From: Basidiobolus meristosporus CBS 931.73
Lineage: Eukaryota; Fungi; Basidiobolomycota
Assembly (NCBI GenBank): GCA_002104905.1
Contig: MCFE01000437.1
Span: 1-64,000, forward strand
Length of the DNA: 64,000 nucleotides
Direction: 5' to 3'
Below are positions 5,756 to 64,000 of the stretch, piece by piece. The notes below the pieces were generated by a model. The model saw only the letters and a program-made list of their open reading frames with translations. It did not search any database and was not told the origin of the DNA. Each line of letters starts with the position of its first letter. Position 1 is the first letter of the stretch. The position numbers and the translations under genes are program-made.

Positions 5756-5759
5756 GCAG

Positions 5760-14320: not shown

Positions 14321-14476
14321 ATTAAAATTGATGGATGATTGTATGGAGGCGGTTTGAATTGATTTGGCGCAATATGCATTATTTATCTGATTTTTAATAC
14401 ATTATGGTTAAATCTCCATCAATTGCCATTTATCCCATCCCCCAGCTCACAAGCATGGTCCAGACTGGAAAAGCCA

Positions 14477-25091: not shown

Positions 25092-25479
25092 TGTGGCAAT
25101 TTATCAAGTGATTTGCATGTAGGGAATTTATAAAGAAGTAGTGATAATAGTCAAACTATTGCTCATTCATAAAGTGGATCATTACTTCTACATTTGTTAA
25201 AGTAATATAGCTGTACCACCAAATAAGGAGGGTTTCTCAATGATCAGGGGCATTCTGTAACAGTTTCAGGGTTAGTACATAATGTTAGTAGAAAATATTT
25301 GTTCCATTGAATGGTGCCACATAGTGCCATCCTGTTTATAGTGCTGCATTGATCTGGCACTCTATGGCACTATCTAGCACTATAAATTCTACCAATACAA
25401 GCAGTGGGATATAGTTACTGGTGATTTTACTCAATCCTACTTAGGTTGCTCAGAGTTGTGCTTTCCTGGCTTTATTTTC

Positions 25480-27097
25480 TCTTCATAACGCGCCAGACAC
25501 ATTTCTCTCTAAGGATATCTTCTTGTATGTATGTACTGTGCATAGATATGTATCTTAACTATTAGACTTATTCAGTTGGGTGGTGCCAAATTGAGCCATG
25601 AGTGCCAAATGATGCCATAGTGGGCCAGGGAGGCCAATTGAGCCTATACTTGGTCACAGAGTCTGAAACATAGCTCTGCATCTTCATGCAAAGCAGCCCC
25701 TATGTTTCACCCATTGTACTGGAGAAAATCCATATTTTAACCTTTTTTTTTTGGATCAATGTTGTGCAGGATGTGTAAGAGCACAGAAGGACTGAAGACA
25801 TGCATCTGGTACTCAATACCTATGGCACTCTGAATCTAGCTCCTGTAGGTTGTATCATGTCACAAAAATGCATGGCACTATCTTGGCCCACTGGTACTAT
25901 CTGGCACTATATTTAAATATTAGCCCTAAAGTAAGATCTATACAAAGCACTTATAGTGCCAAATAGTACCAGTGGACCAAGATAGTGCCATGCATTTTTG
26001 TGACATGATACAGCCTACAGGAGCTAGATTCAGAGTTCCATAGGTATTGAGTACCAGATGCATGTCTTCAGTCCTTCTGAGCTCCTACACATCCTGCACA
26101 ACAATGAACCAAAAAAAAGGTCAAAAAATGGTCTTTCTCCAGCATGGTGGGTGAAACAAAGGGGCTGCTTTGGATGAAGATGCAGAGCTATGTTTCAGAC
26201 TCTGTGGCCAAGTATAGGCTTACTTGGCCTGCCTGGCACACTATGGCATCATTTGGCACTCATGGCTCAATATGGCACTATCCAATTGAACAAGTCTATT
26301 TTACCTATTCTGCTGATTTCTCCTATACATGAGTTTCCTCTGTTTTTACCTACTGATATGCTGAATCTCCTTAGATATCCAAATGTATGCTCCACCCTCA
26401 CTCTGAAATGATTAAATATCTCATTGTAGAGCTTTTGCTTCCTGCTAAGCACACCATTCCTTGGCTTCCTATAAGCTGCAATATATCCTAATCTCTGACA
26501 ATCCTCTCCTATATAAGCTAAGTCTGCCATACATTTTTCCCCTCTACTGAATTCAGGATGATTCTCTACCCAGAGTTCTTTGTCATGCCTACTTCCACCA
26601 AATGGCCCACTAAACCAGATGATGTAACCCTCAATGTCAGACAGTGCTTGAAACTTTACACAGTGTGCCTTGTACTTGCCAGAAGAAAAGTGTCTCCACC
26701 CTGTAGAAGGTCTGTTAATCCTGACTGGGAAGGTATCCAAAATACTCCTTATATGGAACCTGATGCTGAGCACTGTGGGATATGGAAGTGTATTCGAGCT
26801 TCTGAACCTAATACTCCAAGCTTGCTCTAAGTCATGCATACCCTTTGCAAGGAGGTTCTCCATTGATGTCAGCTGGGAATGAAAGCTTCTTGGACTTCTG
26901 TTACCATGGATAGTGGGATGAAACCTTGTAGGGCAATAGTTCTTGTAATAGCAGAGAGACTTGACAAGGGATCTCCTTGGGTAGATTGCAATAGATGGTC
27001 CACAGTACTTGGTATCAATCTCCTCTAGTGTGTCAAAAGGAAATCCAGTAGTAGTGATGGAATTGATGAGAAAAGACCATTCAGACAAATAAGTCAT
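25480..27097 (-). pseudogene. DDE_Tnp_4 transposase of PHIS copy 2, open to near the C-terminus and then cut by the MITE
   Basis: ORF 26267-27175 is highly similar to ORF 13436-14320 up to SRIGKI. The remaining codons continue left of the MITE at 25563. Confidence 0.85.
25564..26297. mobile_element. Foldback MITE copy 1 (734 bp) with PHIS termini
   Basis: AGACTTATTC...GAACAAGTCT, with ~347-bp inverted arms around a 40-bp loop. TSD ATT (25561-25563, 26298-26300); the empty site cttaactattttacc is present at 13514-13528. Confidence 0.92.
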
Positions 27098-27549
27098 ATC
27101 AAAATTGGTAGATGATTGGGCTGAGGTGATTTGAATTGATTTGGCGCAATCAGCTTGATTTATCCAATTATTCATGCATTATGATTAAGTCTCCATCAAC
27201 TGCCATGTATCCCATTATTATGGTGAAAAAATCATCCTCAAACAATGACTTGGTTTTTTTATTGATGCTTTGATCACAAGTCTAGAGTGAAATAGGAAAT
27301 CTGCAATTGATGTGATCTGATCAGTGTTAATGCAATCCAGGATGCATCATGCATAATATATGGAAAATTCAATAATTACATTAGATCTCATTTATATTTC
27401 ATATAAGACCAGGTTGATATCAATACACTACTGAATAAGTATCCAAATCTGTCACCATGGTCCCTATACCAAGCCTCAACTCATCTTTAGTACAACCCAG
27501 AAAAAATCCATCCCCCAGCTCTCAAGCGTAGTCCAGACCAGAAAAGTCA

Positions 27550-28523
27550 ATGTTGCATCTGTTTGAGTTCATGCTAAGTGATTTCAATATGGCCAAAGTG
27601 TCTATGATGGGCATTCATACAGATATTTGGACACTGCTCATTAATCTAGCAGAACTAGATACCTTGGAGAGTCAACAGCAATGGAAAAACCAGAGTAGAA
27701 AGCTGTGGCATGAGCTCTACATCAAGATGGCAGCAGTTATATGCAAGAAGATATAAAACAAGACAAGTATTGAAATCAAAAATGAACTGATAGTGAGGGG
27801 ATTTGATGAGGAAGCCATGCGCAAGCAATTTTGCACCCAGTTTGCTCAGTACAGGCCAAACACATCCATTTGTGCCTCAACTTTGAGAACCAAAAAGATT
27901 TTGAATGAGGTTTTGCCTCAAGTGACTAAAGTATTACTTGATATATTGGTAGAGCTAAGTGGCTTCCAAGAGCAATGTACAAAGGACTCATCCAGGAAAC
28001 AGTTCCAAAGTATCAGACAGAGGGTAAGTGAATACCTTGAGGAATCAGAAGGTGAGCTTTAAGAGGAAGAATACAGACTGCAAGCAACAGTGTCCAGATT
28101 GCACCAGCATGCCTTGCTGGAAATCCATTGGAGCAGGCCAAGTTGTGTCAACAAGCTGCATCACATCAAGCTCAGCTAAGGGCCATGCCGGCATATCAAG
28201 TCACATTTGTGTGTGCCATTACACCTGACCATCAGCAAGTTTCTTCTAGTGAACTGACCAATGATGACCCACATGAAGTGCCTCCACCACAAGTGCCTTT
28301 GGCAAGTGAGAGAACACATCAGCGCACCACATTGCAGGCCAGCTCAGTTGCATCATCCGGAGCAATTCAGCATGGCCAAGCTGCAGCATTGCACTCATCA
28401 GCTAGGAGGCAAAATACTGACTATAAATACACAAGTAGTCAAGAGGATAGTCAACAAGAAAGTAGCTTAGGTATGCAAAGTGAATCACTACCAAATGCTT
28501 CAGTAGTGATTCCAATGAGATAA
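27550..28523 (+). pseudogene. PHIS ORF2 (copy 2)
   Basis: ORFs 27550, 27793 and 28128 are colinear with the reconstructed ORF2 of copy 1, apart from an internal deletion near 28120. Confidence 0.75.
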
Positions 28524-31500
28524 AAACCTTGAAGAAGATGATGCAATTGCGTTGAATAGCTATTATTTCTAATGATCCAAACAACACATTTTTTCTTGCA
28601 ATCTGCATCAAGCCATTGCAAATCAGTTGTAACTCAAGTACTGATATAAGTAACATCAAGATTGTCTCACATTTGGGACAGGACCCCTGTAAATAAACAC
28701 CCTGTATATATATACATCATCTGTGGCAACAGTGCAGCCATTTGATCTGACTTGCACCTATACAATTGGTTGCATGCTAGCTATGACACCTTGTCCAATC
28801 ACTAGGATCATGGATTTACTTGCTTAATAGGCAAAATGGGATATTTGATGGCCAATCAGGTAGCTGGTGTATTGGCCAAAGAACCAATTGTGGGCTGACA
28901 GCTTTGGGACACTTTTGGGCCAATGAACCACTGAGATACCATTCAATTGGATTGATGGTAGCTAAAATGGTAAGTATCAGTGTAGTTTATAATGTGATAC
29001 GCATTGATCTCCAATCAAATTCAACAAACATATCCAAATACCAGGTTTTACCCACCATAACGGCAGTTTCCTATTTGGCATGTGATGTAAACATTTCAAG
29101 TTGGCGCAATTGCATGTGCCAACCTCATTTTGTCAGAATGTGCCATAGTGTGCAAGATTGTCCCACATAGTGCAAAATTGTCCTACAGCAATCCTGCCTA
29201 CTGGTAGCCACAATATTGCACCCAATTGCTCTTTCAGACCGCAGTTTGCCTGTGCACCCTGGCATGGTACAATGGAACAAGTCAAAAGTGTTAATTTGAT
29301 CTTCACTATAGCAGAAAATCATAGGATCATAGATCTCAAGAAACTGGGAAATTTAGGGCAGCAAATTAGTTATACAGGGACCAAGACTTTGTTTTGTTAA
29401 GTAAGCTTTTAGCTGCTGAGTGATACCAAATAGTCCAATATTTTGGCACTCCCCCTCAACTAAATAACTTCTAAATCCTAATTCCTCTCTGAGATTCTCA
29501 AATTGTTGTCTAGCTAGTGATTTGAACAATATATTTACCTCTATTTTGTCAGTTGGACAGTAAACTAAATCTACCAAGTTATTTTTGACAGATTCTCTCA
29601 CAAAGTGGTATTATATATCTATGTGTATAGTTCTGGCTTGACTAGCAGGATTTCTAACTAATAAACTACAACTTTGATTATCTCTGCAAATACATGTTGG
29701 TTCATCTGAATCAAGTCCTAAGTCTTTGAGTAATTTCTATGGCTATATAGACTTGTCAGTTACCTGGCAAGCAGCCATATTTTCTGCTTCTGTTGTAGAT
29801 AGGGCCAGAGCTGGTTGCTTCTAGCAATTCCAAGTAATAGCTATACCAACATAAAGCAATACATACCCAGCAATAGAGCATCTGTCAATCAGATCTCTGC
29901 CACAATCTGAATCACTATAATCATCAAATTTTTGCCTAATAGCAGCTCCTAAGTTTCCAGTACCATATATGGTACCTTGTAGATATCTGAAAATCCCCTT
30001 AACAGCTGTATGCTGATCTGATCCATAAATCTGAATGAATTGACTGACTATTCCAACTGCCACTGCAATATCTGGACATGTAGATACTATCAGTACAGCA
30101 GCATACCATCAATTGATTGATAGGGAAAGTTTTGGTCCATATTTAAGCTGTTTTCACCCCAAACTGGCTGAGACTTGCTCAATTTTCAATTATTGTCCAT
30201 TGGGGTAGCTGCAGGCTTGCAGCACTCTATTCTGAAGCAACTAAGAATGTCTCTGATATACTTTGACTGATTCAGCACAGTTTTCTGCATATGCATGTCA
30301 AAATTCACTTTAATTCCAATAAAATAGCTCAATTTTTGAAGATCTTTCATCTCCAACTTGTTGAATATATCTAATTTTGTCTGTGTCAGTGCCTCCTTGT
30401 CACTTGTAGCTATTACTAGGTTGTCTGCATAAGAAATTAGGGCAATCACACCTTCTTGAGCTGTTTCACATATATACTGTGTTCTGCAGTGCTACAAATG
30501 AGCACAATCTCCTCTTGATATGTGTCAATCTTGTTATACCATGCTCTAGGTGACTGATTAAGCCTGTACAACAATTTCCTGAGTCTACACACCTGATGGG
30601 GGTCTTTCAGATTGGTAAAACCTTCTGATTGCTCCATATATATAGTTTTCTGCAAATCTCCATTTAGAAAAGCTGCTTTAATGTCCATTTGGAGTAGATC
30701 TAGACTGTGTATAGCTGACTGGGCTATAATTGTCCTAAGGGAGTTAAGCTTGGCCAACAGAGCAAATGCTTCCTTAAAGTCTGGTCCCTGGATCTGGGAA
30801 TAGCCTTTGGCTACCAATGAGGCCTTGTACTTACAACGGTACCAATTGAGGTCATCTTAATCTTGTAGACCCATTTATATTCGATTGGCTTTTCACCATT
30901 TGGAACATCTACCCGTTCCCACAATTTTGCTTTTATTAGTGTTTGGTACTCATCTTGCATGGCTTGTTGCCATGCCGTAGTATCTAGACTTTGCGTTGTC
31001 TGTTCCAAATTCTGATGGTTGGCAAATAAGGCAAAATAAGCTTCCTCATGATCATTGGATGGCTGCTACCAGGATCAAGGGTCATTTCTTATTCTGGTAT
31101 ATATCCTAACTAGGATATTCTACTTGGAACTGGAACTGATAGAATTGATTTCTGTATCTAGCTGAATTTGTTATGTATCTTCATTAGTGTGGATTGCATC
31201 ATCAGGCAGCTGGCCAATGATTTCTGTGGTTTGAGGAGAGATTTTCCTCAAATACAATGTCCCTGCCCCTGATCAACTTCTGAATTCCGCCATCATGCAC
31301 TCTTTGCCCTATAGTAACATCCCAATACTCAAGAAGAATCACTTTTCTACTCTGTGGCTCCAGTTTGGAGCTTATTTGTCAAGGAAGTGATAAACAGCAC
31401 CACTACCAAAGATCATGAGGTGCTTGAGGTCTAATTTTTGGCCTGTATATGCCTCAAAGAGTGTAGAACCACATAGTGCTATTGTTGGGTGGCTTTTTTT

Positions 31501-33702
31501 GATGTATACCACAGTAGCTACAGATTCAGCCCAAAACCTGTAGTGTATTCCTTTAACATGCAGCATAGATATTCCAATCTATACTATTGTTCTATTTGCA
31601 CATTCAGCTACTCTATTTTGCTGTGGACTATTTGAAACAGTGGTGTGTTGAAGTATGCCAGTTGATCAGCAGTATTTTGCAGACTCCTTTGAGCAGTATT
31701 CCCTGTCAGTGTCACTCTGAAGTATCCTCAATTTACACCCAGTTTATGTTTCCATCTTGTACTTAAAGTGTTTCAATGTCTCTAAAGCCTATTTCTTTGT
31801 TTTGAGGAAGTATTCCCATGTAAATCTTGTCTTGTCATCAATAAGTATAATCAAGTATTGCTTGGCTCCACAGACCAGTGTTCTCATGGGTGCACGTATG
31901 TCTAAATTTACAATAGCCAATATGTTGGTGGTGTCAATGCCTCCTGAGCTCCTGAAACATTGCATGGCTTGTTGGCCATATGAGCCTCCCTTACAGACAA
32001 TCAATTTTATTGGAATTGAGTAATTTAGGCCTAAATAAGTTGATTTTTTAACCAATTGGCTCATTTGTGTTCCTTAAGTGTCCTAGCCTCATATGCCACA
32101 TCTCCCAGTTAGTTTCATCAGTTTCAGAAATGTTGGCATACTCAGGTGCAATAATATTGAATTGTAACTTATATATATTGTGGTATCTGATTCCCAAGCT
32201 AATTTTTATTCATTTTCACTCAATATTGAACAGTTCAGCTTAGTAAAAGCAAATTTCAATCCCTGAGCAGTCGCTTTACTAACAGAGATTAGGTTCTTAG
32301 CTATATCAGGTACTTAGAGTGGTCAGTCAGTCTTGCTGCTGTAGCCCCTGTGATATTTCAAAACAAAGTATGAGTGGCTCATACTATCTGGTAGGCTACA
32401 TAGCAGACAGATGATCTTATCTGCATCATCTACACCAGTATTAATACTGTCTACTTCTTCTGCAAGTGTCTCCATTCTAGTAATGAGTAGTAGCATGTCA
32501 TCATTTGGCTTCTTCCTCATGTTGAAAGACTTGTGTTTTAAATAAAGCTTGCCTGATACTGACGTTGCTCTAAAGATCTTCTCCGAGGATACCCATGCTA
32601 CTTTAGCAATATTTGAAGCAGGGATTTGTGCAATGATGGAATCTTGCATATATGCTGTAGCTTTCTACTTGGATTCTTCCATCTCTGTTGACTCTCTAAG
32701 GTATCCAGTTTTGCTATATTAATGAGTAGTGCCCAAATATCTGTATGAAAACTTTTCACAGACACAATGGCCATATTAGAATCATTTGGCAAGAGCTCAA
32801 ACAGATGTATCATTGACTTTCCGGTACAGATTGTGCTTGAGAGCTAGGGGATTGGTTTTGTCTGGGTTGTAATAAAGATAATTAGAGACTTGCTATAGGG
32901 ACCGTAGTGACAGATTTGGATACTAACACAACAGTAAATTGACATTGACCTGGCATTATATGTAATATATTTGAAAGCTAAAGTGATTGTTGAATTTTCC
33001 ATGTATTATGCATGATGAACCTTAGATTGCATTGACATGGATCAGATCACATCAATCACAGATTTCCTATATGACAATTGACTTGTGAGTAAATCATCAA
33101 TGAAATCACCAAGTCATTGCTTGAGGAGGATTTTTGCAACATCATAATGGGACACATGTCAATTGATGGAGATTGAATCATTATATATCAAATTTAGATA
33201 AGTTAAGCTGGTAATGGCAAATCAATTCATATTGCCGCCACTCATTCATACATTAATTCAGATACAACCTACTCCTCTGAATGGTCTTTTCTCATCAGGC
33301 TCAATACTGCACAGGATTTACTTTTGACACATTAGAGGAGATCAATACCAAGCATTGTGGACCATCAACCCCAATCTACTCAAGGAGATCCCTTGTTAAG
33401 CTTCTCTGCTATTACAAGAACTAATGCCCTAAAAGTTTTCATCCCACCATTCATAGCAACAGGAATCCTAGAAATCTTCATTCCCAGCTGACAGCAACAG
33501 AAAATCACCTTGCAAAGGGTATACATGACTGAGAGCAAATTTGGAATACTAGGTTCAGAGCTCTAATAGACTCCCATATCCCAGAGGGTTCAGTAGCAGA
33601 TTCCAAATAAAGAGAATTTGGGATACCTTCCAGATGACAGACCTACCAGAGGACAGGGGCACTTTTATTTTGACAAATACAAGGCACACTATGTGAAGTT
33701 TC

Positions 33703-34071
33703 TGTTGCAATTTAAGAAGTGATTTGGATATACGGAATTAATCAAGAAATAGTGATAATAGTTGAACTGTTGTTTATTCATAAAGAAGCTCAGTATTTAT
33801 ACCTTTGTAGATGTAATACAGCTGCAACACTAAGTAGGAAGGGTTTCTCAATATTCAGGAGCATTCTGTAACAGTTTCAGGGTTAGTACATAATGTTTGG
33901 TAATAGTGCTAATTTGATCCTGACTATAGGGGAATAATCATAAGATCATATATCTGAAGAAAGTGGCAAAGTTAAGGCAGTAAATGAGTCCTACAGTGAC
34001 TAAGACTAGCCTAGAATTGTTAAGTAAATTTTTAGCTGCTGAATGATACCAAATAGTCCAATATTTATACA
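33703..34071 (-). repeat. Copia 3' LTR
   Basis: Direct repeat of 37997-38365, immediately downstream of the polypurine tract. Confidence 0.95.
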
Positions 34072-37000
34072 CTCCCCCTCAACTAAATAATTTCTTAATC
34101 CCAATTTCTCTCTAAGGATCTCAAACTGTGGCCTAGCTAGTGGTTTTGTCAATATGTCTGCCACCATATTGTCAGTTGGGCAGTAAACCAGCTCCACTAA
34201 GTATTTTCTACAGCTTCCCTCACAAAGTGATGCTGTATATCAATGTGCTTAGTTCTAGCATGATTAGTAGGATTTCTAGCTAATGAAATACAACTTTGAT
34301 TATCCTTGTAAATACATGTTGGTTCACCTGAATTAAAACCTAAGTCTTTGAATAATTTTTGTAGCCATAGAGCCTCCTTAGTTGCTTGGCATGCAGCCAT
34401 ATATTTGGCTTCAGTTGTAGATAGTGCCACAGGTAGTTGTTTCTTGCAATTCCAAGTAATAGCTGCACCAGCATAAAGAAATACATAGCCTGTGGTAGAG
34501 CGTCTGTCAATCAGATCCCTACCCCAATCTGAATCACTATAACCATCAAATTTTTGCCTATTAGCTGCTCCAGAGTATTCCAGTACCATATATATGGTAC
34601 CTTGTAGATATCTGAAAATCCGCTTAACTGCTGCAATTTGATCTGATCCATAATTCTGCATGAATTGACTGACTATTCCAACTGCTACTGCAATATCTGG
34701 ACGTGTAGACACCATCAACTACATTAGGCTACCAACCATTGATTGATAGGGAAAGTTTTGCTCCATATTTGAGCCGTTTATATCTATTACTGGCTGAGAT
34801 TTGCTTAATTTCAGGTTATTGTCCATAAGGGTTGCTGCAGGCTTGCAATTTTCCATTTTGAAGCATCTAAGAATGTCCCTGATGTACTTAGACTGATTCA
34901 GCACAATTTTCTGCGTAGGTATGTCAAATTTGACCTCAATTCCAAGAAAATAGCTCAATTTTCTAAGGTCTTTCATCTCTAACTTGCTGCAGAGATCTGA
35001 TTGTATCTGTTTAAGTGCCTCTTGATCACTTGTAGCTATAATTAGGTCGTCCACATAAAGAACTAGGATGATCACACACTTTTTCAGCTGTTTCACATAT
35101 ATACTGTGATCTGCAGTGCTACGAGAGAACCCAATTTCCTCTAGATATGTGTCAATCTTGTTATACCATGCTCTAGGTGCCTGCTTAAGCCCATACAACA
35201 ATTTTCTAAGTTTGCACACCTTATGGGGGCTTTTGGATCGGTAAAACCTTCTGGTTGCTCCATATATATAGTTTCTTGCAAATCCCCATTTAGAAAGGCT
35301 GTTTTGACGTCCATTTGGTGTAGATCTAGACTGTGTACAGCTGCCAGGGCTAGAACTGTCCTAATAGAGTTAAACTTGGCAACCAGAGCAAATGTTTCCT
35401 TAAAGTCTAGTCCCTGGATCTGGGAATAGCCTTTAGCTACCAATCTAGCCTTGTACTTATCAATGGCACCATTTGAGGTTATCTTGATCTTGTAGACCCG
35501 TCTACATCCTATTGGCTTTCTCCCATTTGGTAAATCTACCAGTTCCCACATTTTTGCCTTGATCAGTGATTGGTACTCCTCCTGCATAGCTTGTTGCCAC
35601 TTAGTAGCATCTGGACCTTGCATTGCCTGTTCCAGATTTTGAGGTTTGGCACATAAGGCAAGATAAGCTTCTTCATGATCATTGGATGTCTGCCACCAGG
35701 ATCCAGGGGCATTTCTTATTCTGGTAGATCTCCTAACTGGGATAATCTGTTCTGATCTGGAACTGGTAGAAGTATCTTCCATCTCTGGCTGGATTTGGTA
35801 CGTATCTTCTTCATTTGTGTTGATTGCATCATCAGGCAGCTGGCCAATGATTTCTGTGGCTTTCTGATCTGAATTCTCCTCAAATACAACAACCCTGCTC
35901 TTGATCAGCTTCTGAATTTTGCCATCATACACTCTATACCCAAGAAAGATCCCTTTTCTACTCTTTGGTTCCAACTTTGAGCACTTTTTGTCAGGGATGT
36001 GATAAAAAACATCACTGCCAAAGATCCTGAGGTGCTGGAGATCTGGTTTTTTGCCTGTATATGCTTCAAAGGGTGTAAAATCACGTAGTGATGTTGTTGG
36101 GCATCTGTACTTGATGTATACAGCGGTAGCAACAGATTCAGCCCAAAACTTGTAGTCCATTCCCTTATCATGTAGCATGGATCTTCCCATCTCTACTATT
36201 GTTCTATTTGCACATACTGCTACTCCATTTTGCTGTGGAGTATGAGGAACTGTAGTCTGTTAAAGTATACCAGTAGACAAGCAGTATTTTGCAAACTTCT
36301 TTGAGCAGTATTCTCCTCCATTGTCACTTTGTAGTACCTTCAATTTACACCCAGTTTGTGTTTCTGCCATGCTCTTGAAGTGCTTAAATGTCTCTAAAGC
36401 TTCATCCTTTGTTTTGAGGAAGTACACCCATGTATATCTTGTCTTGTCATCAATAAACGTCATAAAGTATCTCTTGGCTCCAAAGGACAGTGTTCTCATG
36501 GGGCCACATATGTCTGAGTGTACAATAGCCAATACCTTGGTGCTATTGATGTCTTCTGAGCTCTTGAAACATTGCCTAGCTTGTTTGCCATATGAACATC
36601 CCTTACAAACATTCAATTTGATTGGAACTGAGTATTTTAGGCCCAAAACAAGCTGATTTCTCACCAATTGGCTCATTTTCTGTTCCCCTATGTGTCCTAG
36701 CCTCCTATGCCACATCTCCCAGTTGGTTTCATCAGTTTCAGCAATGTTGACGTATTCAGGTACAATGATCTTGCATTGTAACTTGTATATATTGTGATCT
36801 CTGAATCCCGAAGTTAATTTTTGTCCATTTTCACTCAATATTGAGCAGCTCAGCTTAGTAAAAACAAATTTCAGTCCCTGAGTAGTTGCTTTACTGACTG
36901 AGAGTAGGTTCTTAGCTATTCCAGGTACATAGAGTACGTCAGTCAGTTTTGCTGTTGTTGCCCCTGAGTTATCACTCATGTTTAGTTGTATAGACCCACT

Positions 37001-37960
37001 GGCGGTAGCTTCCAATGCATAGTTATCTCCCAGATAAACCTTTCTTACGGGAATAGTCTTTAAGTTGCTGAACCAATCCTTTATACCACAAATATGCTGT
37101 GATGCTCCAGAGTCAATATACCATTCATTACTTTGGTTACTTGTACTCTCTTGTACAGTGACAAATAACTGTTCATCAGTAGTTATATGGTTTGCCTGCT
37201 CTAGTTTCTGTTTTTTGTCTGCCTGTTTCTTCTTGCATTCTCTTGCCCAGTGTCCTGGCTTCTTACAGTAGTTACAGCAGCCAGGTTTTCTTTGGTTTTG
37301 TTGCTTTCCCTTCTTTTCTGTATGCCTTTCTGAACTGAATAAAGCATTATCTTTAGTTTTCTTTGCTTGATCATTACGTCTGAGTTCTTCATGGAGAAGT
37401 CTTCCTTTGACATAGTCTAAAGTCAAGTTGTCTTCTCTGCTTTCAAAAGAAAGTATGAGTGGCTCATACTTGTCTGGTAGGCTGCAAAGCAGACAGAGTA
37501 TCTTTTCTTCATCATCTACACCAGCATTAATACTGTAAAGCTCTTCTGCAAGTGTCTCCATTCTGGTAATGAGTTGTAGCATGTCATCATCTGGCTTTGT
37601 TCTCATGTTGAAGAACTTTTGTTTCAAATAAAGCTTGCTTGATACTGACTTTGCTCTGAAGATCTTCTCTAAGGATTCCCATGCTGCTTTAGCAGTATTT
37701 AAGGCATGGACTTGTCCAATGAAGGAGTCTTGTACATTGATGCATATTGCATTGAAGGCCCTTCTCTCCTTCTCTTGAAACTTCTCCACATCTTCTGTTG
37801 TTCCTTTGGGCTCAACTTCCTTTCCTGTTACTATGTTCCAAAGCTTTCTTTCCTCAAGGTTGATCTGCATCTTGATTCTCCAAAGTCTGTAGCTCTTCCC
37901 ATCAAAACTCTCCTTTACAGGGAAGATGTTGGTATTGCTTTGTTTGCTGGTAGAAGTCAT
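34006..37960 (-). pseudogene. gag-pol: Copia Gag-Pol polyprotein with two in-frame stops and two 1-nt deletions
   Basis: Zinc knuckle CNYCKKPGHWAREC, protease WYIDSGAS, integrase HSDICGP/DDKTRY/SDNGGEY, RT KARLVAKGY..YVDD and RNase H YSDSDW..KHID. Lesions are TAA at 36260, a frameshift at ~35225, TAG at 34719 and a frameshift at ~34197. Confidence 0.95.
34072..34083 (-). promoter_or_regulatory. Polypurine tract GTTGAGGGGGAG
   Basis: Purine run abutting the TG of the 3' LTR; the same motif occurs in copy 2 at 29449-29460. Confidence 0.85.
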
Positions 37961-37984
37961 CTTTAAAATAGATTAAGGCAATCA

Positions 37985-37996
37985 GGGCTCATAACC
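37985..37996 (-). promoter_or_regulatory. Primer-binding site GGTTATGAGCCC (internal, half-tRNAiMet type)
   Basis: Directly follows the 5' LTR end CAACA. Its complement GGGCTCATAACC is the initiator tRNA-Met anticodon stem-loop, the known priming mode of copia-type elements. Confidence 0.85.
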
Positions 37997-38365
37997 TGTT
38001 GCAATTTAAGAAGTGATTTGGATATAAGGAACTTATCAAGAAATAGTGATAATAGTTGAACTGTTGTTTATTCATAAAGAAGCTCAGTATTTATACCTTT
38101 GTAGATGTAATACAGCTGCAACACTAAGTAGGGAGGGTTTCTCCATATTCAGGAGCATTCTGTTACAGTTTCAGGGTTAGTACATAATGTTTGGTAATAG
38201 TGCTTATTTGATCCTGACTATAGGGGAATAATCATAAGATCATATATCTGAAGAGAGTGGCAAAGTTAAGGCAGTAAATGAGTCCTACAGTGACTAAGAC
38301 TAGCCTAGAATTGTTAAGTAAATTTTTAGCTGCTGAATGATACCACATAGTCCAATATTTCAACA
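37997..38365 (-). repeat. Copia 5' LTR
   Basis: Direct repeat of 33703-34071, followed on the minus strand by the PBS and the gag ATG at 37960. Confidence 0.95.
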
Positions 38366-47512: not shown

Positions 47513-50500
47513 TGCCATGATATACTGCATGAATGTTTAAGTTAGGTCAGTTTTTAATCAATTTAATTAGTTTCATGTTTGGCCTATCAGCATATCAGTG
47601 TTATCTATTAGATTAGTAGAATTGGTCAGCAGAAGAATTATCAGATCCTTATCACATAGAAATTGATATATTAGGCAACATATATTTGAGCAATGCTGAT
47701 GCCATCAAATGAGTCAACAGCCACAACCTACATTATGGAATACAATTAGTCAGCAATTTACTTGATAAAATGTATATAAGGAGCTGCTGCAACCTTAATA
47801 ATGATCAATTAAAGCTAAACTGTGTATACCTTGACTATTCTTTTATCAAGACTTATCAAATTGGTAGCAGCAATAAATAGAAACCTTCCCCAAAGAAAGA
47901 AGAAGCCCCCCCCTCAAGATGACAGAAAATCAAGAATGGAAGAATGCTATGCAGCAAATCCTGGCCCAGTAGCAATGGTAACTCCTGATCCTTAGCCAGC
48001 AGCAACAAGGAATGGCTACCATGGAACAGAACCAGCAAAACATTGTCAAGAGCATCTCTAGTGCTCAGGTCAACCAGTACCATGGTAGAGTCAATGAAAA
48101 CCTGGGAACTTGGCTCTTCCAAATTAAGGAAGCTTTCAAGGCCAGGGAACTGCTCCAGAAAGCAAGTTGCATTATGCAGCTTCTTACTTAACTGATGCAG
48201 CTTTACAGTGGCACCACAACAAGATCATGCTGGCCACTATGATGGGTACTCTTCAATCTCTACCTGGGATGCATTTGTGTTGGAAATTCATGATACTTTT
48301 GAGCCCCTTCACCAGCAGTAACTACTGAGAAGGAAGCTCAAGACACTGTGACAGAAAGGTATGGACCTAGAACAAATCTATGAATACAGATGTCTTCCTG
48401 GACAAATTGAACAAATGAACTTCACGGGTCAAGTTGTATACTATATTGATGTGTTGAAGGAAAGAATTTGCAAGGAAGTGAATTATCAGATACCTCAAAC
48501 TATTGAAGAAGCTGTAAAGATTGCCAATGAGTATGACTCAGCTATGTTTGGAGTTGAAATGCCCACAATGACTACTCAGAGAGGCCACAGTAATTATGGA
48601 AGATGACAATCAGAAGTACTGCTAATGGAAATGGACACTATACAGAAGAATGTAAGAACAAGGAACCTTGCTTTCATTGCCACCAGCAAGGACATATTGC
48701 AAAGTACTGCCCTCAGAGAAGAAATGAACACTAGTCACCAAGAATCCTCAGCATTTTGAAGCCCTTGAGCATAGCAACATGGAGGATGAACTTGAAGAAG
48801 ACTCAGAACTCACCTTGCATATAAATGACAAATATGTATCCAAATGACCTCAAGCTCAGGATATCTACTATACTTGAATGGGGTAACTAATGGAGTAGCT
48901 GCCAAATCATGATTGACTCAGGAGCATTGCATGAGTACATGTTAGCGCAATTTGCTTTGAAAGCTGGAATCAACTCAAAACCCACCACATCAACTTCAAT
49001 GCTAACAGGAGATGGGAACTCTCACATAATTGACCATATTATTCAGCCAGTAAGAATGAGGATAAACAACTATGAAGAAAACCTAGAGGCCTTTACATTT
49101 AAGAACTGCAAGTTTGACCTTGTACTTGGAAAAATCTGGCTATTTAGTTGTAATCCATCAATCAACTGTAGAACACAAGCTACTCAGATCCTGACAGACT
49201 AAAAGACCTATGAGCAGTTACCTGCCAGACTGGATTTCAACTTGGTCAACTCTGGTTTGTGTGAAACAAATGAGCTTAGCTAGATATAGTTCTGTAGAGC
49301 ACTTAGAAAAGGTAGCCAGATGCTCCTCATGGCAGTGTCACAGGAAATCTCCTGTACTCTAGCACCCCTGAAGGTCCAGAAACTTTTGAAGGAATATTCA
49401 GATACACTTTCAAATGAACTTGTAAGCCTACCCCTGTCAGAGATGTGGATCAGGCCATTGACACAGGATTTGGCCCCCCAGTAAGTAAGACACCTTACAG
49501 AATGAGTCCATTGAAGTTGGAAGAGATGAAAAGACAAATAGAACAGTTATTGAAGCAAGGATATATCCAACCCAGCAAGTCCACCTGTGGAGCACCAGTA
49601 TTTTGTGAAAAAGAATGATGAAGCACTTAATAGACTTGTTCCATTGGATATTGCCACATTGAGCCAAGAGTGCCAAATGATGCAATAGTGTACCAAGGAG
49701 GCCAAGCAAGCCTATATTTGGCCACTGAGTGTGAAACATAGCTCTGCATCTGCATGCAAAGAGGCCCCTGTGTTTCACTCATTGTGCTGGAGAAAATCTA
49801 TTTTTTGACCTTTTTTTCTGGATCAATGTTTTGCAGGATGTGTAGGAGCACAAAGCAATTGAAGGCATGCATCTGGTACTCAATACCCATGGCACTCTGA
49901 ATCTAGCTTGTGTAGCTTGTATTATGTCACAAAAATGCATGGCACTATCTTGATCCACTGGTACTATCAGGCACTATATATAAATATTAGCCCTAAAGTG
50001 AGACCTATATAAAGCACTTATAGTGCCAGACAGTACCAGTGGACCAAGATAATGCCATGCATTTTTGTGACATGAAACAAGCCACAAGAGCTAGATTCAA
50101 AGTGCCATGGGTATTGAGTATCAGAGGCATGTCTTAAGTCCTTCTGTGCCCTGACACATTTTGAACAATGTTGATCCAAAAAAAAAGGTCAAAAAATGGA
50201 TTTTCTCCAGTACAACAGGTGAAACACAGGGGCTGCTTTGCATGAAGATGCAGAGCTATGTTTCACACTCTGTGGCCAAATATAGGCTCACTTGGCCTCC
50301 CTGGGACACTATGGCATCTTTTGGCACTCATGGCACAATGTGGCACTCTCCAAAGGAACAAGTCTAATGTACATTGACTACAGAGCCCTCAACTCAGGTA
50401 CCATGAAGAATAAGTACCCCGTACCTTAGACTGATGAGCTTTTGGACCAACTCAATGGAGCTACCATATTGAGCATGATTGACTGTATGTCAGGATACAA

Positions 50501-52312
50501 TCATATTAGGGTAAAGCTGGAAGACATCCCTGAGACAGCATTTAGTACCAGATATAGATATTGCAAGTACTGAGTCATGAGTTTTGGCCACACCAATGCC
50601 TCTGCAACATTCATGACCTTAATTCAAACAGTCCTCCAGGAATACTTAGACAAGTTTGTGACAATCTACCTAGATGACATATCAATCAACAGCAAGACAG
50701 AAGAGGAGCACTTGGTGCACATTGAAAAGGTCTCAAAGAAGCTAAGAGAGAACAAGCTGTACAGCAAGCTAGTAAAGAGTGAATTCTTAAAGCAGCATGT
50801 TAAATACCTGGGGCACCTAGTGACTAGTATAGGAGTGACCTTAGACCCCAAGAAGGTTGAAGTCATCAAGAATCTGAAGCAGCCCCACAGCATATTGGAA
50901 ATCAGATCATCCCTTGGAATGGTTTTCTATTATTGGAGACTTGTCAAGTCCTTTGCACGTATTGCAGCTCTTTAACTGATATCCTCAAGAATGACAATAT
51001 CTACAAGTTAGACATAGCTTATGAGACTGCCTTCCAGACACTCAAGAATGAACTTGCTCAGCTGCCAAGCTTAAGAATACCTGACTTCAGAATGAGTTTA
51101 TTCTGTGAAGACTGATCATGCCCAACTCAAGTATATATTTACTCATAAGGTAGTATCAAGAAAAATGACATGATGCAGTGAATACATTCAGCAATTTGAC
51201 TTGGAGATTGTCTACTGCCCTGGGAGAAACAACATGGCTGCTGATGCCTTATTAGAACTAGAACAAGTTGCACAACTGAAAACCTGCCCTAATTGCCTTT
51301 GCAACCAAGGCTAACAGCAGAGAATTGCTGAGCTCTTTCCCTTCAAGCCTGTGAGACCATTTGAGGGATGGGTAATTGACTTTGTTGGAAGACTGTCAAC
51401 CACCAGGAAATTCAACCATTGGACTCTAGTAGCAATTGACCATGTCACTATATGGCCAGTGGCCAAAATGGTACCTGTAGCCAGTGAACAAGAAGCTGCA
51501 AGTTTCATATACCATGAGATCATCATGAAGTGTGGATGCCCTGTAGAGATTTTATCTAATAAAGTTGCAACTTTGTGGCAAAGATTTTGGAAGCTTACTT
51601 GGAAATGCAACAGATCAGACACTTGAATACCACAGCATATTACCTTAGAAGCAATGGAGTGACTTAGTAGTTTAATGGATTATTTTGAAAAATGCTGACT
51701 AAGCATGAAAATGGAGTTGTCAGTAAGTGGGATGAGTATATAGACCAAGCACTCTTTGCCTGCAGAGTAAGAGTGCAGAGTACCACTCAACAATTGCCAT
51801 TTTACTTTGTGTATGGATGTGAGCCAAGGATTCCAGGAGATCTCACACAACAAAGCTTACAATTGCCCTAGAAGATGAGATCAGTCAGCCAAGTAGACAC
51901 CAACAGCTGGAACAAAGATGTCAAGAGGCACAGGCAAAAGTATTGCAGAATGCAGCAAAGATGAAGCTGATATTTGATAGGACTTTATCACCAGAGGCAT
52001 TGATAGTTGGGAACTTTGTATTACAGTGAAAAAACACATGGAAGAAGTTTGAGCCACAATGATTAGGACCCTTCAAGATCATAAGATTAATGTCCATTTG
52101 TAACTTACCAACTTGTGGACAAGCAAGGCAATATTTTGGAAGACTTAGTTTATAATGACCAACTCAAGCTTGCAAGACTTGCTGACAATACTGAACCATC
52201 AGGATACTAGTATCAGAAGAAAAGAAAATCAGGGGAACACTTGTAACTTTAGTAGGGGAGAATGTTATGATCTGCTGTTTAAATGTTTGAGTAAGATCAG
52301 TTTTTAGTCAAA
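47513..52312 (+). mobile_element. Decayed Ty3/gypsy element with 5' LTR, PBS, gag-pol, PPT and truncated 3' LTR
   Basis: LTR 47513-47860 and PBS TTGGTAGCAGC at 47861. Zinc knuckle CFHCHQQGHIAKYC (~48670), protease IDSGA (48909), RT YLDDI (ORF 50577) and integrase RPFEGWVIDFVG..AID (ORF 51351). PPT AGTAGGGGAGAA at 52251, then LTR start TGTTATGATC at 52263. Confidence 0.88.
49632..50365. mobile_element. Foldback MITE copy 2 (734 bp), inserted in gypsy RT
   Basis: AGACTTGTTCC...GGAACAAGTCT with TSD AAT (49629-49631, 50366-50368). It splits the RT motif VKK.DEAL|..IDYRALN. Confidence 0.92.
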
Positions 52313-56806: not shown

Positions 56807-58828
56807 CCCTATAAAAATAATTTGGTCCTGCAAGTGGATACAATCCAGATCAGCTGTCAGTACCTTGTTTGGAGACCATCATAATATCAGCAGCTTGGAA
56901 TTATTGGCCCTCTTAATGATCTTATGATGGGATCATGATGGCATTTGGCTACTTTACTGCCAAATAAAGCTATAAAACTTGAAAAGGTTTGATCAGTGCT
57001 GTGGCAATAATTGCATGACATTGTTGCAGTCTTAATGCACTCTGCAGCAATTTTAAATGGATCTAACTGGCCAGTACATCCAATTGCCTTATATGACAAA
57101 AAACTTGACAGTGCTTTGGCAGCCTCATTGCAAGTCTCCAATAGTAGTATCCTGGCAGTATTGAGGCCTACAGCTAGTTCTGTATAATGTTTCCATACCA
57201 ATTTACCAAATGGTATTTCCTTTTTCTACCTGCCCTTGTGCAATACATGATTCCACTGTAGAATCACCCCTCTTTATTTTTATTATATTCACATACAGGT
57301 CAAATCAACAAACACTATGGCCTCCTGCTTACTAACCTCTACCAATGCACACACCCAGCACAATTGACATACTTTTGTCACCTCAACTTTATGGCGTTTC
57401 AGTGTAATACTTGCAAAGTTGCCATATGTCTTGTATTGCTGGTAACCTATACATCTTGCAAACATATACTAGGTTGCTGCCACTTCTGCCATGAATGCCT
57501 CCTGAATATCTGCAAAGAACCTTTTGGTATTTAGCTAATATATTCCTTTGCCCTACTAGATTTTAGTCCTCCTTATACGTGTGCTCTGACTCTTGTTTGA
57601 ATGAATTCTGTATTGAATGGTGCAGTAGTTGGCTTGTGACCAAGAGAAACCCAGCATACTTTGGCTGAGCTTTTCTGTTCAAATTAGTTGCTTGTTGCAC
57701 CCAACCCTACTTTGCATTACTTGGCTGATTACCCACACATTGGGGCTGCTTGGCATCTTGATCCTGGAAGCATTAGACTTGTTCCGTTGGATAGTGCCAC
57801 ATTGAGCCATGAGTGCCAAATAGTGCCATTGCATGCCAGAGAGGCATAGTAGACCTAAACTGGGCCCCAGAGTGTGAAACATAGCTCTGCATCTTCATGC
57901 AAAGCAGCCCCTGTGTTTCACCCCTTGTGCTGGAGAAAATCCATTTTTTGACCTTTTTTTTAGGATCAATGTTGTGCATGATGTGAAGAGGACAGAAGGA
58001 CTGAAGACATGCATCTGGTACTCAATACCCATGGCACTCTGGATCTAGCTCCTGTAGAGTATATCATGTCACAAAAATGAATGGCACTATCTTGGTCCAC
58101 TGATACTATATGGCACTATAAGTGCTTTGTATAGGTCTTACTTTAGGGCTAATATTTAAATATAGTGCCAGATAGTGCCAGTGGACCAAGATAGTGCCAT
58201 TCATTTTTGTGACATGATATATGCTACAGGAGCTAGATTCAGAGTGCCATGGGTATTGAGTACCAGAAGCATGTCTTCAGTCCTTCTGTCCACTTACACA
58301 TCATGCACAACATTGATCCAAAAAAAAAGGTCAAAAAATGGATTTTCTCCAACACAATGGGTGAAATACAGGGGCTGCTTTGCATGAAGATGAAGAGCTA
58401 TGTTTCACACTTTGTGGCCAAGTTTAGGCTCACTTGGCCTCCCAGGCACACTATGGCATCATTTGGCCCTCATGGCTCAATGTGGCACTATCCAACAGAA
58501 CAAATCTATTGGTGTCTCCATGTGCACATCTATCCTCAGTATTTTCCAGTTCTTTCTGGCTGTCCTCCAAGTACCAACTATCACATCTATCACAGACTTG
58601 AAGGTAATATTCCTGATGAGATTAGGATGCAGTAGAACCTGCAACTTGACTTGTCTTTCTATCCCCCACACATCTGCTCTATAGGAAACTCCAAAAAGGT
58701 GAAGCAAGGCCCAATATTCTCCACGCACCAGGCAAGATGGAGTGGAGAATTGATACAGTAGTGGCAGAGATCTATGTGTTCAGCTTTATGTTTGTAGTGT
58801 AGCCACTCAAATCCCATTGGGCCTAAAA
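56807..58828 (-). mobile_element. CMC element, 3' portion with terminus, carrying a MITE and cut by the next CMC copy
   Basis: Terminus CCCTATAAAAATAATTTGGTCC at 56807; colinear with the reverse complement of 7600-8880. Confidence 0.85.
57775..58507. mobile_element. Foldback MITE copy 3 (733 bp)
   Basis: AGACTTGTTCC...GAACAAATCT with TSD ATT (57772-57774, 58508-58510). The empty-site length matches gcataggtgtctcc at ~4908-4921. Confidence 0.92.
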
Positions 58829-59082
58829 CCCTATGAAAAACTATTGTAATGATCCTGCCAAAAGGCTGTGACAAAGCTGAAGTCCCATGACTAAGAGGTA
58901 CTGATCCTATCAGGGCACTGTGCAGTGACCATTGAAAAATAATTGTACCCCAGATATTGCAAAAAAACATAGTCAAAGTTCTTCATCAAACAATATACAA
59001 GTGGCTTTTAATTGGTTCCCTGCCATTTCACTCACTTTCTGACCCTGGACACTTTATCAGCTCCTACATTTGTGTGCATTGA

Positions 59083-61902
59083 TTGGCTATTGCTTCTTTT
59101 TCACACTCCTTACTTTTTATGCATACAAATTGCTCTATTTCCATTGAAACTTCAGTTGTACCTCAATTGCCAATTGTATTGACCTATACAGTCCCTATAC
59201 CTTACACCAACATTAAGCCCAACCCCACACTTAATAAGTATTTCTGCTGTAATGCTCTGGTTCCACAACTTTGGTGGGAACCTAACAGCTTTATGCCACT
59301 GCTCATTCACTGGTTCCCATATGTCCTGGTCTTCAGCCGGCACTGCAAGGTCTAGCACCTCATCTGCCAGTCTTTGCAACAAATCCTTGCAATATTCAAG
59401 TGTGTTTTCTTGAGCACTGCTCTTGAAGAAGTGTTGCATCCCCATGGTGAGCCTGTTAATGTTCCAAAATTCCACTGAAGGCATTGTAATATTGCTTCAA
59501 GTTCTTAACATTGTAGCCTTGCTTGTCAGTGGGAACTGTACTCTGTCAACAATGGAGGAGATGGAGGCTGTAGTAGGTAAATTGCCTTTCCCTGCAAACT
59601 CATCTGCCTTACTGGAGTGTAGCACAACTGGCTGCACTTTCAACTCTTGTGAAAACTGATGTTTTCTTGTTGGTAATTCTTCTTAGCTATGATGAGATTC
59701 AGTCTGTTCCAGGCTTGTGGCATTAATTGGCAAGAGCTACATTTTTTTTCATGCCTCCCTGTCTCAGCCATGGGTAGACATTTTTCCCTTTACTGTTTCC
59801 TTTATCACTGCCAGGTCTTCTACTCCTACATTGTCTGAGTACTTCTTGTAATGAACTATATTTTCTCCTTGAGAAATTCTGCACTGACACATCTGTTTTG
59901 GCCTGCTTGCCCCTTGCTGGCACTCACCTGGCAACCTGAAGTTTCTTTTTACTTGTTTCAAGCTCTCTGCTGTAGTTGTGATGGGCCCCTGTAAAAGCCA
60001 CTAGTTTTTATCACTGCCAGGTCCTTCACTGCTACTTTGACTGAGTGCTTCTTTAGTGGTGCTATGCTTTTTCCTTGATAATTGCTGTGCTGGTGCATCC
60101 ACGTCTGCCTGCTTGTCCCTGATTGGCACTTTTCCAGCTACCTGAAGTCACTCTGACACTTGTCTGGAGCTTTTGGCCCTGCTTGTAACAGGCTCTAGAG
60201 GATGCTGGTTTTTAGCCATGGTACCCTTGTTCTTCTGCCATTGATAGTTTCTGCTATTCTTAAGATACTTTCTTAGCATACCAATGCTGGCCCAAAATCT
60301 GTTTGTCCATTTGAATCCAGGAAAATGCTCATGGAACAAGTCAAGTGCATTTGGCTTGGCTTTGAGTTCCTGATGGTCCCATGCTATGCCAGCCTTGTGG
60401 CAATAGTGTGCTAGACTTCTGATGGCCTCTTGACAATTAGCCCACTCTTCATTATTGCACTCAATGGCTAGATGAATCTTCAATGTCTTTTGATTTTTAG
60501 GCTCTAGATTAAACACCACATTGTCTCTCTCCCATGCTGCAATAGGTTTTTCTGTGGACTTATCATTGGGCACTGTTGTTGTGCTTCTAAGACTGTATAG
60601 TGTTCCTTTGATGTTACATTGGGAAATGGCTCAATTCTTGGCTGTGATGTTGAGCTACTTGAGGTCCTTCTTTACATCAAAGATACTGCTTTGTCTACCC
60701 AGGATATTGATTACTCTATATATATTATCCCCTCATCCTGCTACTGGACTATTTCCTGGTTTCTCTTGGCCATCGCATCTATCCTATCAGCCACTGCACC
60801 TAATTGCTTCATTAATACATCAGTATGAGCTGACGGTATACTTGCTAATAAGGGTGGTGGTGATGTTATGACAGCTACTAGACTTGTTCCGTTGGATAGT
60901 GCCACATTGAGCCATGAGTGCCAAATAATGCCATAGTGTGCCAGAGAGGTAAAGTGAGCCTATACTTGACCACAGAGTGTGAAACATAGCGCTGCATCTT
61001 CATGTAAAGCAGCCCCTGTGTTTCACCCATTGCGCAGGAGAAAATCCATTTTTTTACCTTTTTTTGTGGATCAATGTAGCTCAGGATGTGTAAGAGCACA
61101 GGAGAACTGAAGATATGCATCTGGTACTCAATACCCATGGCACTCTGAATCTAGCTCCTGTAGCTTGTATCATGTCACAAAAATGAATGGCACTATCTTG
61201 GTCCACTGGTACCATATGGCACTATAAGTGCTTTGTATAGATCTTACTTTAGGGCTAATATTTAAATATAGTGCCAGATAGTACCAGTGGACCAAGATAG
61301 TGCCATTCATTTTAGTGACATGATACAAGCTACAGGAGCTAGATTCAGAGTGCCGTGGGTATTGAGTACCAGATGCATATCTTCAATCTGCTTGTGCTCT
61401 AACACATCCTGCACAACATTGATCCAAAAAAAAAGGGCAAAAAATGGATTTTCCCCAGCACAATGGGTGAAGCACAGGGGCTGCTTTGCATGAAGATGCA
61501 GAGCTATGTTTCACACTCTGTGGCCAAGTATAGGCTCACTTGGCCTCTCTGGCACACTATGGCATCATTTGGCACTCATGGCTCAATGTGGCACTATCCA
61601 ATGGAACAAGTCTACTTACTGGTCTTCAAATGAAGGCACTGCATTTGCTACATTCTCATCTGCCTGAGCATAACAGTCAGCTTGCAGCTCTGCAGAGGTT
61701 CTTAATTGCCTATCTTACTGAGCATCTGAGGAGTCTGCATTATTACCTTTAGTGGGCACACTGTTAAGATGCCCTTTTTTAGATGTAGCCCTGCTTGTTG
61801 CACTGAATTTAAAGCAAGCTGTTGTCCAACCATACTTCTGTTGCTGTCAGGAGTGGGGCTTGGTTGGGAACCAGACAACTTTGCTTTATTTTTTGGAGGC
61901 AT
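59083..61902 (-). pseudogene. CMC accessory ORF X (best-preserved copy), split by MITE copy 4
   Basis: Fragments 61702-61902 (MPPKNKAK...), 60148-60573 (EEWANCQEAIRSLA...IAWDHQELK..DLFHEHFPGFKW..FWASIGMLRKYLKNSR), 59723-59923 and 59152-59484. Confidence 0.72.
60880..61613. mobile_element. Foldback MITE copy 4 (734 bp)
   Basis: Arms 60880-61226 and 61267-61613 (347 bp each) with loop 61227-61266. TSD ACT (60877-60879, 61614-61616); the empty site gctact is present at ~11862. Confidence 0.93.
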
Positions 61903-62339
61903 TTATATGGAAGTGAGTCAAGCCAAAGGAGAAATGGTGCTACATATATGTGTGAATGTGGTGCCACAACTTTGTTTATAATGCTTACTATGGTGGGTCA
62001 TCATTGAATCTTACATTTTGTAGGTGCAATGTCTCAAATACAAGACTGTCTTAAATTCATATGAGCATTGACAAAAGGTTTATAATTGTGCTATATTTTT
62101 GAAGGTCATACTGTTTGACCCATGGACAAGACTACCTTGATTCAATGCTGTAAGACAAGAGAAAACAGACCATGTAGCTGTTGTAGCAAGCCTCTCAGCC
62201 ATTAAGCATGCAGACAGCATACAAAGTATTACAAGGATCACAGCCAATGTTTTGCCACATAAGTCATATTTGACCATTCATCAGTCACTAATGTACCAAC
62301 ATTATCTTGCTGGCCAGTTGATACTTTTATATTGGCACC

Positions 62340-64000
62340 TGACCATTCTTGCCACCTTGCGCAAACTGAGTCAGGTGAGTTTGTGACACCTTTAGGCTTA
62401 CCTCAGCTGTCTTAATATGGCATGCAGAGTGATAGCTTTGACAAAGATGGCTCACTGATGGATTGCGCACCTATCTCTCTTAACAACAGAACTACATATG
62501 AGCCCAGTCAAGTTACAATATGCAATGAGACAACACCTGTTGAAACAAATGCCAATGATACTTTATGGAGCCATGTGAGCCCAGTAATCCATCTACTGGT
62601 GAATGATGTAATGTTCTGGCCAGAGAAGTAGCACATTTCCACTAATATCAGTTACTAGGGCTTTGAGTATATATTACTACTTGTTGCCAAAATCATTCTG
62701 GGATGCAACTTACCATGTACATGTTACATGTGGACAACTGTGATGCAGCTGACAGCATATGCTCCCAATACTGTCCTGATTCCCGCATGTGTTAACAGTT
62801 GTATGGCATTCACATCCAAAAATGCCACTATTACATCATGTTCAAATTGTCAGGAATCCACCACCATTGAGGGAAAGCATTGTTCACACTTCAGATATAT
62901 TCCAATAATACCACATCTAAAGAAGCTAAAGCAGTCCAAGATATATTACAAAGCTATACAGTACCACACTCAGTATCAATCAAGTGCAAACATATCCAAT
63001 ATATTTGATGGCAATCATCACAAACAGCTAAGAAGCAAGGTCTACTTTGAAGGTATATTTGACCATGCCTTTGCCTTAGGACTTGATGGATACTCATTAA
63101 ACAAGTACTCTACTAGTAAATCCTGCTGGCCACTGATTCTCATCAATCTGAATCTGCCACCCATCTAGCAGTATCAGAGCAATAATCTGATAGTAGTCTT
63201 ACTGGTATCTGGGCCTTAATCACCATCCAACCTGGATATCTACCAGTATCCATTGCTGGATAAGTTTTGTATGCTTTCTAGCAGGATAAAAGTAGATGAC
63301 TGTCATGCAAAAGCTCATATTAACATCTGCATTGCAGAAACCCCAGCCATCAGCAAGATAGCAGGTTTTTCTGGGCACAATGGACAGTATTACTGTCAAA
63401 TGTGTGAGATCCAGGGGATTCACTCCATAACTCAAACACATTATTATTACCCAAACACCAACACTAAGAACATCATCTTTTCTCAGAGAGAATGTACAGA
63501 AATCAGCATGCAGCTGCACCAAAGTTGTCAAGCTACAAGCCATTGGCTGAAATATGGGATCAATTGGAAACCAGAGATACTTAAGACAGAGGGTATCTGT
63601 TGGAGCAAAAGCTTTCCACTGGGAGCAATGCATTTGCTTTTCAACAATACTCCTATACTGATGACCAAGTTGTACATAGGGCAGTTCAAGCTAAATGAGC
63701 CCCTCAAGATACCGGAGAAATTTGAAAGAATTGGCAAGATATTATAGAATAATCACTACCCTAGGCACATCTCACAGGCGCCAATCAATATTCATACACA
63801 TATGCAACAATACTAATGCAAAGACTGGATGAACTGGATATGTATTTAATTAAGTGGCATTCTAAAGCCATTCCTACCAAGAGTACATTGGAAGCATTGG
63901 GAGTCATAAGCGGACATTGCAGGAATATTTATCCATAAGTGGATCACCAATGCCAACTTGACACATCTACAGCTGTTATGCAAGGAGTTTGTAATGGGAA
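62340..64000 (+). pseudogene. Tnp2-like transposase, N-terminal two-thirds
   Basis: ORF 62728-63168 (CVNSCMAFT...IFDG...LGLDGY..WPLILINLNLPP) and ORF 63253-63747 (AETPAISKIAGFSGHNG..CQMC..GAMHLLF). Confidence 0.87.

Follow-up and report, generated by a model that had tools for sequence, protein, structure and literature searches.

A fold-back MITE family with the terminus and ANT target of a Pangu-type transposon in a repeat nest of Basidiobolus meristosporus

A near-palindrome of 734 bp at positions 60880–61613 in a repeat-rich contig of Basidiobolus meristosporus raises the question of what kind of element it is, how it came to lie there and which transposase moved it. We analysed the first 64,000 nucleotides of the contig (MCFE01000437.1; hereafter the window). 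BLASTN of 60880–61613 against the window recovered exactly four full-length copies with pairwise identities of 85–91%: copy A at 25564–26297 (minus strand, 734 bp), copy B at 49632–50365 (minus strand, 734 bp), copy C at 57775–58507 (plus strand, 733 bp) and copy D itself (plus strand, 734 bp). These are the four near-equal lengths given in the original prediction. Beyond the four copies, BLASTN matches in the window were confined to 28 nt at 13273–13300 and 64 nt at 18607–18670.

Each copy consists of two inverted arms of about 347 bp separated by a loop of 39–40 nt, the arms (2 × 347 bp) making up nearly the whole of the 734 bp. In copy D the left arm occupies 60880–61226, the loop 61227–61266 and the right arm 61267–61613, and a repeat search found its arms to be 92% complementary at a separation of 40 nt. 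Arm complementarity is 86–92% across the four copies; arm-to-arm likeness is lowest in copy B (85.9%), which is the most decayed. The loop has a GC content of 27% and, when A and B are read as reverse complements, is the same in every copy, in keeping with the earlier description of a near-palindrome around a fixed AT-rich loop. Folded as RNA, copy D forms one long hairpin of −607.7 kcal/mol, compared with −209.5 kcal/mol for shuffled sequences (z = −48.8). A fold energy so far below that of the shuffles, together with the presence of four full-length copies, excludes a chance origin of the copy D palindrome. Each arm also carries an imperfect palindrome of its own of about 50–65 nt (GTGAAACA ... 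TGTTTCAC; arm positions 94–158), located in copy D at 60968–61032, which gives the element a nested dyad symmetry.

According to the ORF lists, the reading frames that overlap the copies are either short or enter from the flank, and the copies are non-coding. The element is thus short and non-coding, has inverted-repeat ends, is flanked by target-site duplications (TSDs) and occurs in multiple copies, as a miniature inverted-repeat transposable element (MITE) does, and its inverted arms constitute nearly the entire element, as in fold-back elements.

When oriented by the loop, all four copies start with AGACTTGTTCC and finish with GGAACAAGTCT. Every copy is flanked by 3-bp direct repeats, which on the plus strand read ATT (A), AAT (B), ATT (C) and ACT (D, at 60877–60879 and 61614–61616), a pattern of ANT. 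Because the window is a nest of repeats, an empty site for every insertion is found within the same 64 kb: paralogous unfilled sites lie near 13526 (A), 40445 (B), 4903 (C) and 11866 (D). The flanks of all four copies align across these sites once the element and one triplet are removed; for copy A, 57 nt at 13494–13550 align gap-free after removal of the MITE and one ATT. The same gap-free alignment ruled out a different delimitation, with a TA duplication and a GAC terminus. The 3-bp ANT duplication combined with a matching unfilled site means that each copy was inserted as a whole unit. Were the palindromes instead independent local inverted duplications, or artefacts of assembly, there would be no mobile unit to explain. 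We give this account practically no credence: the same loop, ends and length recur at all four sites, all four have 3-bp duplications and paralogous empty sites, and the copies differ from one another by 9–15%, hence are not assembly duplicates.

The hosts of the insertions are themselves repeats. Copy A has landed in a transposase gene, that of the large Pangu-type copy 2 (below), and severs the C-terminus of that gene. Copy B has entered a Gypsy-type LTR retrotransposon, with the protease (48909–49202) on one side and the reverse transcriptase (50577–50975) on the other. Copies C and D share one unclassified repeat block, 2.4 kb apart and in the same orientation. The earlier statement that the insertions had entered three transposable element families is therefore reasonable. 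The unclassified block spans 56807–64000 and recurs in rearranged form at 4072–13138, towards the window start; an ORF within it (62728–63168) gave a sub-threshold hint of Transposase_21 (EnSpm-like).

Which element could have supplied the transposase? The window contains at least five copies or fragments of a large element, with 77–90% identity among copies. Copy 1 (13273–16373, 3101 bp) has a 16-bp terminal inverted repeat (TIR) starting AGACTTG and is flanked by the TSD ATT at 13270–13272 and 16374–16376. It encodes an uninterrupted transposase of 294 amino acids (13436–14320, minus strand), in which DDE_Tnp_4 is the only Pfam domain and for which the best NCBIfam match, IS5, falls below its cut-off. 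A word search of 5.8 billion proteins returned three relatives only, at 59%, 35% and 31% identity; the closest (P0001) is of equal length, and one of the three is a cyanobacterial transposase. The catalytic D, D and E (D121, D192 and E236) are shared by all of these relatives in the alignment. The nearest atlas neighbours are diatom DDE_Tnp_4 clusters, which we treat as a lead only. A second reading frame, ORF2 (14474–15631, plus strand), is divergent from the transposase gene and contains three in-frame stops; its pieces had no Pfam match at E values up to 1. Copy 2 (25295–29284), the host of MITE copy A, has both the transposase gene and ORF2 broken. As ORF2 carries three stops in the sole copy with an intact transposase, the window holds no demonstrably autonomous copy.

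We compared the large element with the published groups of the PHIS (PIF/Harbinger-ISL2EU-Spy) superfamily. Members of the Pangu group have an ANT TSD, TIRs of 11–40 bp starting with AG or GG and a mean length of 3487 bp, and encode a DDE transposase that has no further domain, plus a second ORF in which no motif is recognised (PMC4482050). The element described here likewise has an ANT TSD, a 16-bp TIR starting with AG, a length of about 3.1 kb (versus about 3.5 kb), a DDE transposase alone and a motif-free ORF2, so that both ORFs of the group are present, with ORF2 broken in both copies read. For a place of this transposase in the Pangu clade, which adjoins bacterial IS5, the cyanobacterial relative and the sub-threshold IS5 match give no more than indirect hints. 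It departs from canonical PIF/Harbinger elements in that its TSD is ANT rather than TWA (TTA/TAA) and its ORF2 has no Myb/SANT match. ANT-targeting Harbinger elements have also been reported in Ectocarpus (PMC12477816).

A further Pangu copy, whose left end is at 38968, is occupied by a young Copia-type LTR retrotransposon (33702–38360). The LTRs of this retrotransposon are 365 bp long (33702–34066 and 37996–38360) and 97.5% identical, and its gag-integrase and RVT_2 ORFs are on the minus strand; the MITE copies are far older. Its polyprotein had no relative above 41% identity.

The link between the MITE and the large element lies in the termini. At either end of the MITE, the outer 28 nt are identical to the left end of 13273–16373, the end that adjoins the 3′ end of the transposase gene. 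At positions 17–28, which discriminate between the two ends of the large element, the MITE tip agrees with the left end at 12 of 12 positions and with the right end at 7 of 12; both MITE ends are thus of the left-end type, as originally proposed. For the motif ATAGTGCCA, the window has 27 occurrences where 0.4 are expected, nearly all of them in the MITE copies and the left ends of the large element. Within each arm it is found in forward orientation at positions 20, 39, 49 and 59 and reversed at 259, 309 and 338. The first 70–90 bp of the large left end show the same motif order as the MITE arm, with a forward motif at position 18 and reversed ones around positions 57–90. Judged from their sequence, the ATAGTGCCA clusters are putative protein-binding sites.

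Together with the published description of the group, by which we assigned it, these features make the MITE very probably a non-autonomous fold-back member of the Pangu group. The original prediction of a fold-back MITE with PHIS termini was borne out in this respect: the family has both its terminus and its ANT target in common with the local PHIS element, here of Pangu type.

The likeness stops a short way into the arm. An nhmmer profile built from the eight arms matches only positions 1–35 in the three large left ends of the window, and about 310 bp of each arm had no match anywhere in the window with BLASTN or with this profile. The arm interior without a source had been put at about 250 bp; its existence is confirmed, and its size is about 310 bp per arm. 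With 28–35 nt shared per end and about 310 bp per arm orphaned, another autonomous partner could be the real one: a Pangu-type element elsewhere that bears most or all of the 347-bp arm, from which the MITE would derive by deletion or inversion. A terminal fragment at 18607–18670 (minus strand) favours such a partner besides the unmatched interior, as the arm profile reaches positions 1–64 there, farther than in any large copy. This solo end of a related element had no partner end within about 2.3 kb upstream or about 2.5 kb downstream, and may be a remnant of the lineage behind the MITE arms. However, no element with the full arm occurs in 64 kb that include at least five copies or fragments of the large element, and it is well established for other MITEs, such as Tc7 with Tc1, that short shared termini can suffice for cross-mobilization. 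On balance we consider a separate partner of this kind rather unlikely, and mobilization by the local Pangu-type lineage remains our preferred reading.

Tc7, a close parallel, rides on Tc1: it is short and non-coding and consists almost wholly of two inverted arms of about 345 bp, of which the outermost few dozen bases match Tc1, while the remainder is unrelated to Tc1. The MITE described here is also almost all inverted arms, with only the outer tip matching its putative autonomous partner. Tc7 differs in belonging to the Tc1/mariner superfamily, in its TA target and in a unique centre longer than the 40-nt loop. Long-TIR MITEs listed in the literature include Tc7 of C. elegans (PMC3814204). 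Fold-back MITEs in which the arms span the whole length include Hairpin of Arabidopsis and the PALTA/PALTTAA families of C. elegans, and CbmPIF1a is a long-TIR PIF MITE (PMC3814204). Fold-back MITEs of this kind are thus familiar, as are long-TIR MITEs with an interior unlike that of the autonomous partner. Like the present family, each of these is essentially one hairpin, is non-coding and has the TSD of its own superfamily; their targets are TA, TTAA or TWA, in contrast to the ANT target and Pangu-type partner of the present family.

Long inverted arms are also found in Foldback (FB) of Drosophila and in Galileo, but those elements carry long internal tandem arrays and vary widely in length. 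Tandem Repeats Finder (TRF) detected only 2–4.5 copies of a 10–19-bp unit near the tips of the MITE arms, corresponding to a motif of about 10 bp repeated about four times near the arm tip, and the length of the MITE is fixed at 733–734 bp. Identity with Drosophila FB-type elements was rejected, given the constant length and the lack of long tandem arrays. For the Pangu group itself, the founding survey (Han et al. 2015) lists autonomous families and concedes that MITEs may have been missed (PMC4482050); a 734-bp fold-back derivative is absent from it, and our literature search found no description of a Pangu-associated fold-back MITE. The family is therefore a new one of an already known kind of fold-back MITE, comparable to Tc7 with Tc1.

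Searches for relatives outside the window used the invariant 19-mer of the loop, which had no match in viral_contigs and four in metagenome_contigs. Three of the latter (L001, L002 and L004) were rejected as MITE copies, the likeness extending over 19–20 nt only, as expected by chance; the fourth (L003) comes from a human-oral metagenome. We found no tRNA and no Rfam family in the window, and its Copia and Gypsy elements and ANT transposon speak against human DNA.

To reconstruct the history of the family, we placed all eight arms in one alignment, the four right ones as reverse complements. None of its columns tells left arms from right arms; with no fixed difference between the two, the founder was a perfect palindrome. 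The loop alone therefore defines the orientation of a copy. The original prediction had noted the loop in both orientations, and this is indeed seen (A and B versus C and D); it conveys that the element was inserted both ways, and flipping of the loop as a process would look the same.

Each arm diverges from the consensus by 4.3–8.4%, with transitions about as frequent as transversions. The maximum-likelihood tree of the arms is star-like, with end branches of 0.034–0.084 substitutions per site. Such a tree would fit one amplification period, as the predicted burst implied; with arms 4–8% off their consensus and end branches of this length, however, the amplification is old, not recent. The arm divergence is comparable with the 77–90% identity of the large copies, which argues that both the MITE and the large element spread long ago and within one broad period; on the sequences compared we see no sign of recent activity of either. 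CpG is extremely depleted throughout the window, at an observed/expected ratio of 0.07, compared with 1.4 for TpG and CpA. In the intact transposase ORF the CpG dinucleotide is completely missing, and the 347-nt consensus of the MITE arms contains a single CpG but 23 GpC. The CpG depletion is older than the MITE amplification and suggests that CpG has long been heavily methylated or avoided in this genome.

The two arms of a copy resemble each other in a further respect. Derived bases that are private to one copy and common to both of its arms number 4, 1, 4 and 2 in the four copies (11 in all), and many of them are transversions. The 24 arm pairs formed between copies share 10 such bases, which corresponds to 1.67 expected per four pairs (Poisson P = 1.5e-6). 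This excess indicates that mutations pass between the arms at least occasionally. One further variant present in both arms, at alignment column 308, divides the copies into two pairs, A with B and C with D. Three variants occur in the left arms of C and D and are absent from their right arms, from which it follows that the arms are inherited as such and are not rebuilt from one arm at each jump; any copying between arms is occasional and not a full reset. The three shared left-arm variants, with the proximity and common orientation of the two copies, make C and D sister copies. We tentatively suggest, as one possibility and not the favoured one, that the arms evolve non-independently, with mutations copied from one arm to the other by intramolecular conversion or by repair on a hairpin template while the element transposes or replicates. 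If this is true, lineages would stay near-perfect palindromes while they amplify, and the fold-back shape would owe its persistence to active maintenance rather than being a frozen accident.

Variants shared between the arms of one copy also preserve pairing, and they can be read in favour of a quite different role, in which the MITE is retained as a regulatory locus of the host or the parasite, whose hairpin transcripts of about 350 bp are diced into small RNAs that silence Pangu elements or direct methylation. The predicted RNA hairpin is extremely stable; copy A lies within a transposase gene, where read-through would put the hairpin in the transposase transcript (a lead); and small RNAs from MITE-derived hairpins have been documented in plants (for example PMC3086885). 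However, likeness to the parent is limited to 28–35 non-coding nt and includes nothing from its genes, so that small RNAs aimed at the family's own ends, as had been proposed, would have little substrate. The arms have decayed by 4–8% each with no sign of constraint, down to the 85.9% of copy B, the window has no Rfam match, and arm-to-arm conversion explains the shared variants equally well. We regard this regulatory reading as speculation of low probability. Extrusion of a cruciform from the DNA, which had also been proposed, is likewise unlikely: a spacer of 40 nt and the present mismatch of 8–14% between the arms would both disfavour it.

Our preferred reading, a fold-back MITE of the Pangu group, suggests the following course of events. 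The founder, a perfect 347-bp palindrome around the 40-nt loop, would probably have arisen by inverted duplication of one transposon end together with about 300 bp of orphan sequence. Both of its ends would have carried the recognition features that the 3.1-kb element has at the end next to its transposase gene, namely the 16-bp TIR and the clustered subterminal motifs of the ATAGTGCCA type. These would have been recognized by a Pangu-type DDE transposase, probably acting with the second protein of the element, and the MITE would have moved by cut and paste, each insertion duplicating an ANT trinucleotide. One old period of amplification, roughly concurrent with the spread of the large copies, would have been followed by decay.

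The family is of an ordinary kind and opens no new class of system. Its value is that of a clean case with internal controls: a fold-back MITE is linked to the little-studied, ANT-targeting Pangu branch of PIF/Harbinger-like transposons, whose MITEs the founding survey explicitly left uncatalogued, and all four insertions are accompanied by empty sites in the same window. Its description helps the annotation of a genome rich in transposable elements, and the 28-nt shared tip with the ATAGTGCCA clusters offers a concrete substrate for probing how Pangu transposases recognize their ends.
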